From NCBI GenBank assembly GCA_964304625.1, contig OZ199840.1:10363220-10427219 (forward strand): 64,000 nt of DNA, written 5' to 3'. The translations under genes were made by a program, and so were the position numbers. This document shows, one piece after another, positions 36,001 through 43,793 of this stretch. The DNA comes from Kudoa neothunni (Eukaryota; Animalia; Cnidaria). Each line of letters opens with the position of its first letter. The first letter of the stretch is position 1. The notes beneath the pieces are model-generated. The model made no database searches. It had not been told where the DNA came from and saw nothing but the letters and a program-made list of their open reading frames with translations.

Positions 36001-36835
36001 TTTTTACAGGCAAACCTTTTAAATATCCTAATACAACAGATTTAGTTTTAATACATATATTTTTTACCTGAAGTTGATATATAATTATACATAATGATTT
36101 ATCAGATAATACACAATAAAAATCCTTGTAGAACATTTTTATATTAATTTTCCAATTTTTAAATATATATATGAATATTTTATAATTATGAAAAATTATT
36201 TTTTAACATAAACCTTTTTAGGATTTTAGTTTATTAGGCCCAATGATATCATTAAAATAAGGTTAAAAATTATTAGTATTTATTTACTTTTCGTCTCCAT
36301 AATCAGTGCAACGAACGCTCAATATTCTTTTATTTATAATTTGTTTCTATGCATGGAAAATATAAAAAACATTGTGGAGTGTTTTTTGTAAATTCAATAA
36401 ATTTAAATGTAACATTTATATTGAATTAGTTCAAATACAACTCATCATTACCTAATATCAGTATTTTTCAATACTTCCAGTATAAAAGAATAATTAATTC
36501 AAATGATAACTTGTTTTGTTTAGTTATAAAAATAAGTATTTAAATATTCAATATATTGTTGTATATAGATAAAATAGAAATATTCTTATTGGTAATATTT
36601 TTCTCATGTAATAAATAAATAAAATGTAACAAGTAATATTTAAAAAACATAATATTTTATGTTAAGGCATAATAACTAATTTTTCTGACGAGTAATCATA
36701 TTAGATATGAATGGCTATTGATCATTAAAGTTGAATAAGTTTAGTGTAATGAAGATTTTTGTGAAACAATTAATTAATCCGCTTTATTATTAGTTTTTAT
36801 TGTTTACCATATAACGAAGTTCTATTATCAGACAA

Positions 36836-39800
36836 ATGAGACAGAGTTATGCTGGAATATTTTTTCTCTTTATTTTCATAGGTAATATCCCCCAAAAATT
36901 ATTATTCTCAATTTCCGTTAGTTTTCCAGTCACATTATGACTTTGAAAATGATATTGATAATAATATATTGAAATTGAAATATTTGGATGAAGATAACAA
37001 ATATCATATTTCACTCTCTGGCTATAATATCGAAAATAGCCATAGAAGATGTACCCTTCAATATTATGATAACGCCGAAAACAAACTTAAGAAAATCCCT
37101 TCTTGTGACACACATATACCTAGCGCAACTGATAATGGAACAGCTAATATGTGTATTTACCACTGTAAAAAAGTTACATTGAAAATAACTTCGGGAGAAT
37201 TTAAAAAAATGAAATATTTAAAGTGGTGTCAAGGAAAAAATGACGAGGAAGCTAAAAAATGTGCCATTAAAAGAGTCTTTTCTGTCAGAGGTACTTTAAA
37301 AATTTAGAACAGATTTAATATTTCAATAGATATTTACTTAAAAAGTTATATAAACGCAACTAAAGGAATTGATGAGTTTACTGTTACAGTTAAAAGCAAA
37401 AAAAATGACGGATTTGTTTCAAAAATTGAGGGAAAAGAAGAAATTCAAGTTTCTGAAACTGAAGCGTTTTATCATGCGAATAATATAAAAATGAAGGCAA
37501 AATCACATTATTCAAAATACGTTGTCGAATTTAAAAATAATTCACCCGAAATTCAATTAAACCCCTTAAAACCAGTAGAAGATTGGTTTATTTCAAACGG
37601 ATCCAAGAAAAAGGTTGATGATAAGTATTATTATTCTTTAACTCTCCAAAATCCATTACCTTCCAAAATATGTTATTTCGGAATAAAACATATAGATGAC
37701 TCGTTGTTTTCTTCTTCGTGTTCTGAAATGAATAAAGCTGGACCATGCTTTCAACCATGCCATAGAGCAACATTAAAATATTGGAAAGATTTAAATTTTG
37801 CACAGGTAATGGTTAAGTCATATGACAACCCAACATCAAAAGAATTTATTCATGTAGTCACATGTGAGTATAATAAAAAGAATTTTTTTAACGTATAACT
37901 GTACAATTAGTTGGAAACGAAAATCCTATTGCAACGATTACAAATGATCAAGCGACTATTGATTTAACAAATTTAAATAAGAACGAAGATGATAGCAATA
38001 TTCAACATGGTTCGAAAATTGAGGAAATTAAAATAATAAAAAAATTTCTTGGAATTGGTACTGTTTGGAAATCAGCTACGTGTAATCAGGGACTTACTGG
38101 CTTCAACTCAAAAATTATTACCTCATTGGAAAAACTAACAGAATACATTCTCAGAGTTAAAATATCTGGATTAACAACGGTGGATTCTTCTGAAGTCAAT
38201 TATTATCATAGATATTTCTATTTTAAAACAAAAGGTATTTATGAATGATTACTGATAAATTAATATTTTTGAATAGGAGAAGAATTTACAGGATCTAAGG
38301 CTATTACCGTAACTACCATTCTAAATGTGCATACAAAATTATCTGTTAATCTGTCAAAACTTGCTTCTGAAGGGAGCAATAATAATAATAATGCTATATG
38401 CCAATTATACTATTCAACGACTGGAACTTATCCCCTGAAACTACCTGCCACATGCGAAAATTTGGACCAAAATCAATTATGTTCTGGGACATGCATTAGT
38501 ACTTTCACCGTTGTGAACCTTGATCCAAAAACAAGCTATAAATTTACTGTTTGCCCTGAGGGGTACACATGCTTCGAAATAGATAATGAGACAGAAAGTA
38601 ATGTTTATAGTTTTGTTTAATAATAAATATTTTTAAAAGCAACTGGTGAAACACCTACAATTGCATCTAGATATGATAGCTCAACCAAAACATCAAAAGT
38701 TACGGTAACTCTTCAAACTGGAAAATTTGAAGGTGTTTGGGGTTACTTATTAATAGAAAAAATATCGAAAATAGCAGTTATTGATTGCTTGAATTCTGGA
38801 TGCAATCCCGCAGTATCATCTAATGATTTAAGTTTTGAACTGACTAATTTTAATTCTGATCTTACATTCAGCATAGTTATGTTTAAAAAAGATTACACAA
38901 ATCCGAAGATAGCGGATATACAAAGTATTTTTTTAAAATAATAAGTATTCATATTTTTTAGGAGACAATGTGGAAAGCTCTGGCCCAATGATTCTTCGAT
39001 ACGACACGTCCGGCCAAAAATATAAAGTAAAATTTAGAGGTGGCCCAACAGCTGTAGGTAGTACACAGTGTATCGTAAAAAAGTTGAAATCAGACTTAAC
39101 CGGCTTTAAGCGTGATAGTGAAAATAATACAGAAATTAGAAAAAATTGCGATCAGCTAACGGACGAAGAGGATATTAATATTGATGCTTCACATAAGTTT
39201 AATTATGTTTCTGTTACTTATGAGCATACAGTAAATGCGGGGGCACAAAAATTAAAGTCAGGAATTCAGAAATCATTAGATTCTAAATCGATTTTGTTTC
39301 AAGAAATTAAAAGTCCTCTAATAATTTCTAAAAGAAGTATGGTTGAAAAAAGTGCAACAGATGGAATGAATAGACGAGAAGTCGAAGAAAATGATGATGT
39401 AGATAAAGGAGATAAAAAAGTGGTAGCGGAAAAGGATAGTCAACATAATTTGTTATCAAGCCTAGAACCTCAGAAGAAAACGTCTCCAGAACCAACTCCT
39501 CCGATTAAATATTTTAAGGGATTCGTCTATTCAATTTATATAGGTAAAATGTAGTCAATCTATTATTATAATTATTATATAAGATGGTTATGAAGAGATA
39601 ACGTACACCGCATCACATGTTGATGGGAATATCAAGTTAGGATTGAATAAATGTTCATTACGCTGTAGCGTATATAAAGATAATGTCAAAGATGATTCTA
39701 TAACCGAAACACAATCACCTACAGATTCCTGTACCTTTGGAAGCTACTCAATACCATTTACAGAGTTGATCGAGGATTATTCTATACATTGTCCTAATTA

Positions 39801-42800
39801 TTTTGATTTTCATTACTATTACGATAATAGTTTTGTAAAAAACCACGCTCCTATGTTTAACCGTTTTTACTATATGTTGGCTGTTGACGAGGAAAAAATA
39901 CAGTTAGACGTAAAATTAGTTAACAAAGAACCATCTGAAATATGTACATTTGAATGGATAGATACGACCACGTCATCATCTCTCCAATATTTTTCAAGTG
40001 AATGCAGTAACAAAGAAAACTGCTATTATGGTTTGTGCAGTGATATGCGTTTTGATAAAGTTGAAGCTGAAGTGAAAGCAATAAAAATACGTGTCCTCAT
40101 GCTAGGAATGTTTCCTGTTATTGGCTACCAAAATAACGTCTATTTATGTAATTATTTTTATTGAGTACCTAAATTATATTGAATTTAGTAAAACATGGAA
40201 GCGACGTGCCTGTCATAACTTCAAATAATAAGATAAAAATTGATATTAGTAATAATAATAAGAACGAAGATGATCAACTAGTTACTGATTCCAATCTCGC
40301 GGAATGTGGAATAAAAAATTGGAACATTTATGCACCCTTGGTTAGCGAAGATGAGAGGAAAAGTATCTCCATTCCAGGGTGTAATTTTGGAGCATTAGAA
40401 ATATCACCAGTTGAACCTACCTTGCCAAGTGATATTATGGTAACAATAACAAATGTTCCAAACTATAAACTAAAGAAATATTTTTACCATAAAATTAGTA
40501 AGATTTATATTATATTATAATATCTAATTATTCATTCTTTAGCTAAAGGAAATTATTTAAATATAGCTACCGAATCTGTCGGTGCTAATGCAAAAGCATT
40601 CACGCTCACTCCATATTCGACAGATACAACGATCAAATGTAGTATCTATATCAAAGAACGTAATGCAAAAGATTATTATCCTGCTACATGTGCACAAAAC
40701 AAATTATGTGTTGATAAATGCAACACTCTATTTACTATTGATGGCCTTTATTCTGGTACCAACTACGACATCAAGATTATACCTAGTGGAAGTTACGATG
40801 TTGAAATCATCGAAAATAAGCAGACATGTACATGTATCAATTTTTAAATTGACTAAATAAACTTTAGCTGGCATTGCCGTTGTATTTGAGATTTACAATG
40901 ATTTTACTAAAAATACTCTCAAAGTGAAGTCGAAAGAAAGTTTTGAAAGTCCAAGTGAAACCGACTGTTACTACCAATTATATAAGCACGAATCAGATAC
41001 AAGTAATCATTGTGTTTTGATTAACAATCAAAATGGTTTAGCTTCATTAACGACAATATCGCAGTCATGTATTGGATGCACATCGGGAAAAGAACATATG
41101 AAATGCGATAAAATAGAATTTGATTCTACTGTATATAATCATAAAAATAATTACCGGTTATTAATATATGCAAATGGAAAATCAGCCCCATTTAAGCTTG
41201 TTATACCAGGTTATTTGACAATGATTTATGTTTTGTATATTTGTATAGTATTTACAAGGATGGGAACGCTTGAACAAAAATTTATAGCAGCTACAGAACG
41301 CCACATGGAAAAATTTTCTATAACATTATCAGGATTTACAGCTAGTTATAAATGTGCCATTAAAATTTCAAAATTCGTTCTCGCTTCCACGCCTACCTTT
41401 GTCAATCCGATATGTTCATCCAATACTGTAGGAGGCGACTGTATTAAAGATTGTAATTCAAGCGACATTGAGGTTGGGCATATCAACTCAAAAGTTGATC
41501 GCTACGTTTCTATTTGTTATGGATCAGATGATAATAAAGCAAAAACTTGCAGATCACCTTCGATTTACGCTATAAAAATGAGTATTTTAAATATTTATTA
41601 TCATCCAAAATTTTGTTTTTAAATAATTACTTTTTTTAGATTACTTGCAGAAAAATACGTACAAATTAGAACATGAAAATGGAAAGATGAAATTTTCCTA
41701 CAAAACAACCTCCAAAACAGATTGGAGTGTTACTGTAGATGGTAAAGAAGATACTTTTAATGCAGAAGATAGAACTAACTTGAAACAAATAAATTATTCG
41801 GACACACCGCAGGACAAATCGGGAGTTTTTGCGATTGATAGGTTTATGGGTTTTTACAAAATTGATTCCACACTTTTATGGCCGGGATTGATTTATTATA
41901 CAAACAGCACTTTTTTAAATACAACGATCCCAATAAAGTCCCAAATAATTTATTATATTTCACATGTTGATGGAGACAACAAGAAAATTAACATAACATT
42001 CTCCCCCGGTCCTTATAATTACGAAATGTGCCATATAAAAGTTTTTGAAGTTGGTGATGATGACTCAGGTAATGAAGGTAAGGTATTGAATGAACGTGAA
42101 GATGGGCTGAATGGTTGCTATCAACTTTGCCAGGATGGAGTGATTAGTTTGACCGATCAATATAAGAAAATTGGAGTCATCGTTAAACGACAACTTGATA
42201 AGAAAGGATTCAAAGAATATTTTAAGAGTGACTGAGAATTATTTTTACAAGTTAAATTGTTTTAGATGGCGACACTGGTTTTTCTTTGGATGGAATTTCT
42301 AGTACGAGCGTAACACTCAAAGGACTGGAAGTTTATAAATCTATTAATGAACATTCAAATTCTGTCTGTACCATTTATGTTACGACGGAAAATAACGTTT
42401 CGGCTAAAAAGCGGGCTCGATGTACAGGCGGTAATTGCGGCACTAATTGCGATGCGTCATACTCCATTACTGATTTGAATCCCGGGACAAGTTACATAAT
42501 TACAGTTGCCATTACAAATATGGGTTTTAATGAAGAATATCTGAGGAAAATGAAATTTAGAACATGTATTTATAGATCAATTATAAGTTCTATTAAGTAT
42601 CTTAGCGGAAGGAACTCAGTTAGCTGTACCAGGAGCAGAGATTAAAATGGAATCAGGATTGGCTACATTAACACCATTCAGTGCTGACAATTCCTTGCCA
42701 ATTTGTAGAATTTATATAAAGGAAGAAGGCCATACATATCCAAAATATATGGCCACATGTGAGGGAATAGGAATTTGTGAAAATAGATGCGACAGCGAAT

Positions 42801-43793
42801 TCAAGATAAATAATCTTGAGTTAGGAAAGACCTATGAAGTAATCGTTGAACCTGTTGACGGTAAAAAGGAAACAACCCAAAAAATCACAAGGGGTACTTA
42901 TTGATGTTTTTAATTAACTAACTATTTCATAGAAAACGTTGATACAACCGTTACGTATAGTTTTAGCGATGGAAGCGACTTAAGGATTATTGTTAACTTC
43001 AACGAAGTCAAAGAAAACTCTATATGCCCATTTATGCTTCATGGGAAAACAGAAGGGGCAGAAAAGCAACCAATAATTGCTTGGTGCAATGATGATGAAG
43101 ATTGTTCTGCTAATAAGTGCGTTATCGATGTCAATGGGTTATCAAAAGAGAATAATTACATCTTGAACGTAAAAGTGAAAGATATTTCCCTTTATAAAAA
43201 ACATGAAATTCCTTGTAATTTGTTTCTGTATTTTTTTATTGTAAAATAATATTTTCTTAATTGTGGCACCGAAAGATGCAAGAATTATTAAAGCCTTAAG
43301 GTTATTAAGATAAAATATTGAAGTTATTTTATGAATATTTTCTAGTAAATTCCTACATCGAATAAATTATGTCAAAATTTATATTAGAAGAGGAAAATAT
43401 AAAGAGTGAATACTCCGATATTAATATAGACGATATAGTTCAAAAAGTGATAAAAAAGATTGAAAAAGGGTACAAAAATTTATTTTATTATTATTAATAA
43501 TATTTAATTAGTAATTACTACTTCAATGAAAATATTAGTGTAAAAAACTAATTAGATAGCAAAGAACAACATGAGCATACCATAGCAGAAAGCCGGAATT
43601 CGTAACTTGGTTATTATCTACTAATCTTAACTCTTTATAGATCATTAAATAGCTACATGTAAATATTGCGTACGACGACATAATAATATTTTTTAGTTTA
43701 TATGCCATGATACCAATTGTGGCAGCACTGTTGGTTTTGTTAGGTATTGGCGTTCAAAAGAAAATTTCCAAAGATACAACTTATGATTTATAA
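36836..43793 (+). CDS. Large (~2,000 aa) type-I membrane protein of Cys-containing FN3-like beta-sandwich modules, ~21 exons
   Basis: Signal-peptide exon MRQSYAGIFFLFIFI. Successive ORFs 36969-43249 join through 34-61 nt phase-1 introns. FN3 tyrosine-corner motifs (NLDPKTSY, GLYSGTNY, DLNPGTSY, NLELGKTY, GLSKENNY) follow C-x(12-17)-C-x(n)-CxxxC. TM LYAMIPIVAALLVLLGIGV, tail QKKISKDTTYDL*. Confidence 0.85.

Follow-up and report, generated by a model that had tools for sequence, protein, structure and literature searches.

Introduction

Spliceosomal twin introns (stwintrons) of the [D1,2] type, in which one intron interrupts the donor of another, have been described so far only in fungi. They are found in filamentous fungi such as Aspergillus, Hypoxylaceae and Xylariaceae (PMC5587772, PMC12403724). 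An internal U2-type GT..AG intron sits between nucleotides 1 and 2 of the donor of an external intron, so that a G lies just upstream of the first donor and a U just downstream of the inner acceptor. Correct excision then needs two consecutive reactions, and the intermediates have been shown by RT-PCR. Both constituent introns are short, as expected where splice sites are paired across the intron. In fungi these introns served as evidence for such pairing, and as models for intron gain, intron loss and one-nucleotide intron shifts. A related form, the alternatively spliced [D1,2]/[A2,3] stwintron, is known from Helminthosporium solani and Trichoderma reesei (PMC5587772).

Other stepwise or overlapping arrangements are known in animals. 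In recursive splicing at ratchet points or zero-length exons of Drosophila and vertebrates (PMC5126111, PMC10156609), a 5' splice site is regenerated after a first ligation to an internal acceptor. Recursive sites read AG|GT, leave the upstream exon intact, and are mainly known from very long introns. In dual-specificity splice sites and U2/U12 twintrons, such as that of prospero (PMC3564746), one short sequence carries both acceptor and donor function, but these are alternative choices between overlapping introns and not an obligatory two-step removal in which one intron interrupts a splice signal of the other.

Here we analyse a window of 64,000 nucleotides (contig OZ199840.1, positions 10,363,220 to 10,427,219, forward strand, assembly GCA_964304625.1) of Kudoa neothunni, a myxozoan, that is, a parasitic cnidarian. 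A sequence-only reading had proposed that two intervening sequences near the 3' end of a large surface-protein gene are [D1,2] stwintron-like, that such a structure was not known from a compact animal parasite genome, and that a strict intron-length definition may enforce ordered two-step splicing. In the literature searched, the papers that use the term stwintron concern fungi or mention it only in passing, none reports an animal case, and a wider search on twin, nested and recursive introns also found none.

Results

The genome and its introns

The assembly has 40,260,978 bases in four contigs, of 17.15, 12.04 and 11.05 Mb plus one of 18,219 bp (contigs C1 to C4, C4 being the smallest). The published description of the genome, assembled from yellowfin tuna HiFi reads, gives 40.2 Mb, three chromosomes, a mitochondrial contig of 18,219 bp, a median intron of 49 bp and 30.4% GC (PMC12239612). 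The mitochondrial contig has 44% GC, against about 30% in the nuclear genome. It is fast-evolving, with very divergent cox1 and cob, and reads TGA as a sense codon. A standard tRNA scan found no tRNA genes in it, and a mitochondrial-mode scan gave only 14 doubtful candidates. The SL1 spliced leader of nematodes is absent even with up to 3 mismatches. Myxozoan donors have been reported to be reduced to GTa, with a weak T at position 6 in Kudoa, and acceptors to little more than AG (PMC13644364).

Two long intervening sequences split by an internal TAG|TAA

The observation of the sequence-only reading is confirmed base for base. On the + strand, site 1 consists of G43300, followed by a complete 45-nt unit GTTATT..TTCTAG (43301-43345) and then by TAAATT..ATTAG (43346-43387). 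Site 2 consists of G43469, followed by a 42-nt unit GTACAA..AATTAG (43470-43511) and then by TAATTA..AATTAG (43512-43555). The intervening sequences are thus 88 and 87 nt long. Joined to the downstream remainders, G43300 and G43469 form a 43-nt GTAAAT..AG intron and a 45-nt GTAATT..AG intron, respectively. Raw reads were checked for an assembly indel at the TAG|TAA junctions, as the earlier reading had asked. Contigs built from the reads of one sequencing run (X1) cover 43157-43414 and 43426-43644 with no differing letters and no gaps, at depth 7-10. This excludes such an indel, although X1 may be the data the assembly was made from.

An intron model was built for the gene from 36882 onward, using the standard genetic code. 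The upstream body (36882-43214) comprises 14 exons encoding cysteine-containing modules of roughly 100 residues, separated by 13 conventional phase-1 GT-AG introns of 37-58 nt. It is followed by a 61-nt phase-1 intron (43215-43275, GTAATT..AAAG), which contains a single AG and is conserved as a 50-62 nt intron in the paralogs. We could therefore model 14 phase-1 introns between 36882 and 43275, and not the 16 claimed by the earlier reading. An open stretch with a signal-peptide-like hydrophobic run (..IISIYLLFVSIISATNAQ..) lies upstream of the modelled gene, at 36230-36388, and is probably a 5' exon of the same gene. An AT-rich 49-nt stretch at 41210-41258, starting with GT and ending with AG inside a long open exon, was suspected to be a hidden intron. 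It encodes a very hydrophobic run (..YLTMIYVLYICIVF..), and as its removal breaks the frame, it was left as coding.

Exon B (43276-43299, 24 nt) ends in ARIIKAL plus the first base of a Lys codon. Its frame is fixed by the long upstream exon and by the only AG available as an acceptor. Exactly one base of the split codon must therefore come from upstream, and no single GT-AG excision can deliver that. Twin site 1 is followed by exon C (43388-43468, 81 nt, xEENIKSEYSDINIDDIVQKVIKKIEK), which runs from phase 1 to phase 1, then by twin site 2 and by exon D (43556-43601, 46 nt, ..SKEQHEHTIAESRN..). Two conventional phase-2 introns of 39 nt (43602-43640) and 38 nt (43659-43696) flank the 18-nt exon E (43641-43658). 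The last exon (43697-43792) encodes a hydrophobic transmembrane stretch (..MIPIVAALLVLLGIGV..), a short basic tail and the stop codon TAA at 43790-43792, and it is conserved in all the paralogs aligned through it.

With the junctions 43299^43388 and 43468^43556, which give ..KAL-K-EENIK.. and ..IEK-D-SKEQ.., the frame runs from 36882 to the stop codon without any internal stop. This joined frame was checked for stop codons only, and all homology searches were made exon by exon. Removing only the inner unit gives a stop after 21 codons at site 1 and after 13 codons at site 2, and one-step splicing from the canonical GT to the distal AG gives stops at both sites, as the earlier reading had stated. 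The two conventional in-frame alternatives that it named, 43301 to the AG at 43406 (106 nt) and 43470 to the AG at 43559 (90 nt), do exist in this gene.

A lineage-specific family with two subfamilies

The only Pfam signal in the gene is a sub-threshold fn3 match on 42268-42564 (E 1.6e-4, 22.3 bits against a cut-off of 25). A search of 1.8 billion protein representatives with the last module exon gave only bacterial FN3 noise and no relative of this family, and so no transcript-derived protein either. This is a lineage-specific surface-protein family. The membrane-proximal module has at least 66 matches in the genome, six of them with internal stops, mostly in tandem arrays (C2: 6.21-6.36 Mb and 9.62-9.74 Mb; C1: 0.34-0.51 Mb and 16.15-16.20 Mb; C3: 9.02-9.07 Mb).

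The 3' ends of paralogs were collected and aligned, and 64 loci could be parsed completely. Fifty-one belong to subfamily A, which includes the window gene and is 65-85% identical to it in DNA, and thirteen to a much more distant subfamily B. Both share the same plan: last module exon, conventional intron, short exon B, twin 1, exon C, twin 2, exon D, intron, 18-nt exon E, intron and transmembrane exon. One further copy (L080, C2:6214796-6215846) could not be parsed, as about 200 bases just after the centre of its twin site 1 read N.

In the fully parsed paralogs the inner unit is GT..AG, the base before the inner GT is G, and the base after the inner AG is T, each at 128 of 128 sites. In a tally of 94 sites, the base after that T is A at 89 and G at 5, and the inner intron ends in TAG at 93. 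Two of the paralogs added later have T after the conserved T. The joined donors are mostly GTAAAT, GTAAAA or GTAATT, with GTGAAT, GTATGT and similar, and look like ordinary donors of this genome (PMC13644364). Outer halves end in TAG, CAG or AAG, while in L012 (C2:984000-990000) the distal acceptor of twin 2 reads TAA instead of TAG, and an AG 9 nt downstream would keep phase 1. By contrast, the interiors of both halves are scrambled between subfamilies and carry indels that are not multiples of three. A recurrence of the same layout at both sites in 64 paralogs is far beyond chance.

Inner units at site 1 are 39-57 nt long. At site 2 they are 38-48 nt in subfamily A, whereas in subfamily B one gene (L049) has 42 nt and twelve (L050-L061, C2: 2.58-2.64 Mb and 10.27-10.31 Mb) have 94-116 nt. 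The long inner intron of L050 has no usable internal AG. Outer units, counting the G, are 38-51 nt. These sizes compare with 37-61 nt for the conventional introns of the window gene. TAAT- and TAAC-like motifs, as candidate branch points, occur in some halves, but they do not discriminate in DNA this AT-rich.

A G at position -1 is not a general property of donors here, since it occurs at 4 of 16 conventional donors of the window gene and at none of the three conventional introns that flank the twins in the paralogs. Coding cannot explain the invariant G either. The base before it varies between A, G and C, and read as an exonic base it would give Ser, Gly or Arg codons. A degenerate copy (L078, C3:10141660-10142710, minus strand) provides a natural control: it has a TGA in the last module exon and no recognisable exon C, and carries A in place of the critical G at site 1.

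The frame predicted by two-step excision is open through exons B, C and D in 62 of 64 loci. The two exceptions, L035 and L042, have a 1-nt indel inside exon C, which is 82 and 79 nt long instead of 81 and 78, the two lengths found in subfamily A. L043 and L044, close copies of L042, are intact. One-step splicing from the canonical GT to the distal AG gives stops in 59 of 64 loci.

Searches outside the family and for transcripts

A narrow motif scan of the genome gave 21 hits against 14 for the control. Nineteen are family members and two are GC-rich and not intron-like. A second pattern, with badly chosen gap ranges, found nothing, and a scan based on open reading frames missed even the two known sites, because the flanking exons are too short. 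These narrow scans gave no evidence for twin introns outside the family.

Three raw RNA runs carrying the same species label as the DNA runs, probably that of the host fish, gave no reads on this locus. This is no test of splicing rather than a negative result, and is explained by the report of the genome's authors that too few RNA reads mapped to Kudoa for transcript-based annotation (PMC12239612).

Discussion

We propose that both intervening sequences are donor-disrupted spliceosomal twin introns of the [D1,2] type, and put this reading at a probability of about 0.8. In this model, the spliceosome would first remove the inner GT..TAG intron (43301-43345; 43470-43511). That would join the preceding G (43300; 43469) to the T that follows the inner acceptor, creating a new donor, GTAAAT or GTAATT. 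A second ordinary reaction would then remove the outer intron, resulting in the junctions 43299^43388 and 43468^43556, in phase 1 through to the transmembrane exon. The outer donor does not exist before the first step, so the order of the reactions is built into the sequence. What our analysis establishes is the architecture, the reading frames and the conservation, whereas the two reactions, their order, the intermediate and the mature junctions are inferred from sequence alone. Family-wide conservation shows selection on exactly the nucleotides that the two-step model needs, and this is the only model that uses all of them.

The interpretation of the sequence-only reading is thus partly supported. 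The layout agrees at the sequence level with the definition in PMC5587772, as the internal intron has canonical ends and an ordinary size for the genome, the G and T that flank it form a consensus donor once joined, removal of the external intron restores the frame, and no single canonical excision would give the correct mRNA, with one paralog (L074, see below) as an exception. The host is indeed an animal parasite. However, the idea that a strict intron-length limit enforces the two steps is not supported, because with inner introns of 94-116 nt in twelve relatives, introns as long as a whole twin can apparently be spliced. Neither is this a peculiarity of one gene. It is an old feature of a family of at least 64 genes, sitting at the same two positions in two diverged subfamilies.

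Other ways of processing these sequences seem unlikely. One-step removal of the whole 88 and 87 nt as non-canonical GG..AG introns would give an identical, in-frame mRNA, and the long introns of relatives mean that length alone does not forbid it. However, it leaves unexplained why an acceptor-like, T-rich AG followed by a donor-like T is kept at the centre while the rest of the intron is scrambled, and why each half keeps the size of an ordinary intron. A GG donor also has no support among the 16 conventional introns of this gene. It is likewise improbable that the main product keeps the outer halves or stops there, giving secreted or truncated proteins without the membrane anchor, or transcripts destroyed by nonsense-mediated decay, with the downstream exons used rarely or in a regulated way. 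Removing only the inner intron does give short tails ending in stops in this gene, and in 14 of 64 paralogs the outer half of site 1 is stop-free and a multiple of three in length. Nevertheless, exons C, D and E and the transmembrane exon are conserved in frame across two diverged subfamilies, while the outer halves vary in length by non-multiples of three and in sequence, as non-coding DNA does.

The least likely reading, in our opinion, is that of conventional single introns ending at 43406 and 43559. Both are in frame in this gene, and the site-1 AG lies in a conserved Ser codon and is present in the paralogs inspected. But this alternative would make the first 19-20 nt of exon C intronic. 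Across 26 distinct subfamily-A sequences, the first 20 nt have nucleotide diversity of 0.14, 0.15 and 0.39 at codon positions 1, 2 and 3, against 0.23, 0.11 and 0.36 in the rest of exon C and 0.48-0.56 in the neighbouring intron. One paralog aligns with a 3-nt gap there, and the stretch is purine-rich, without the T-rich run that precedes real acceptors. It is therefore coding, and exon C begins at 43388. At site 2, the AG four bases after the distal acceptor is absent in 32 of 64 paralogs, although the twin layout is intact in all of them. The invariant central motif would have no role. The exception is one paralog (L074, C2:9717108-9718158) that has lost the first codons of exon C and is in frame only with a single GT..AG excision of about 107 nt to the AG of the conserved Ser codon. 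It may be a decayed copy or an evolutionary escape from the twin state to a canonical intron.

A difficulty for the two-step model is that the G of the central TAG plus the following T already forms a canonical donor, GTAAAT at site 1, in the unspliced RNA. It could compete and give a dead-end product, since using it first would destroy the inner acceptor unless the downstream exon begins with G. That holds for only 7 paralogs at site 1 and 3 at site 2. There the two halves overlap by one G, either could be removed first to give the same mRNA, and the arrangement equals the alternatively spliced [D1,2]/[A2,3] stwintron of fungi. In the window gene and most paralogs the downstream exon starts with A, C or T, so only the [D1,2] route restores the frame. 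Nothing in the sequence explains why the upstream half should be spliced first, and we infer that upstream-first splicing must be favoured, perhaps because it happens during transcription.

Compared with the [D1,2] stwintrons of fungi, the Kudoa copies are not scattered, sequence-similar elements inserted at new positions but two fixed positions inherited within one paralogous family, and their splicing intermediates are so far only inferred. They are not recursive splice sites, because in this gene the centre reads TAG|TA instead of AG|GT, the G of the regenerated donor comes from the upstream sequence and would be consumed in the second step, and the whole unit is under 100 nt.

It is tempting to speculate, although we consider it unlikely on present evidence, that, in what would be the first spliceosomal twin introns of an animal, with at least 128 copies fixed at two positions, an obligatory two-step excision next to the membrane-anchor exons might act as a kinetic gate, which could decide between an anchored protein, a secreted or truncated protein and a degraded transcript. 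As exon C is a symmetric phase 1-1 cassette, the arrangement could also allow exon C to be skipped. Either would give the parasite a post-transcriptional control over which surface variants are displayed.

In summary, our results indicate a probable first animal case of [D1,2] spliceosomal twin introns, supported by conservation but not yet by transcripts. Finding this layout in a cnidarian parasite would show that it is not peculiar to fungi, and the 64 or more diverged copies form a natural mutational series for working out which nucleotides the mechanism needs. Gene finders that allow only GT-AG or GC-AG introns cannot model these genes. They will truncate or frameshift the C-terminus and lose the membrane anchor of what appears to be the largest surface-protein family of Kudoa neothunni, at least 66 loci against 5,316 predicted proteins in the published annotation.
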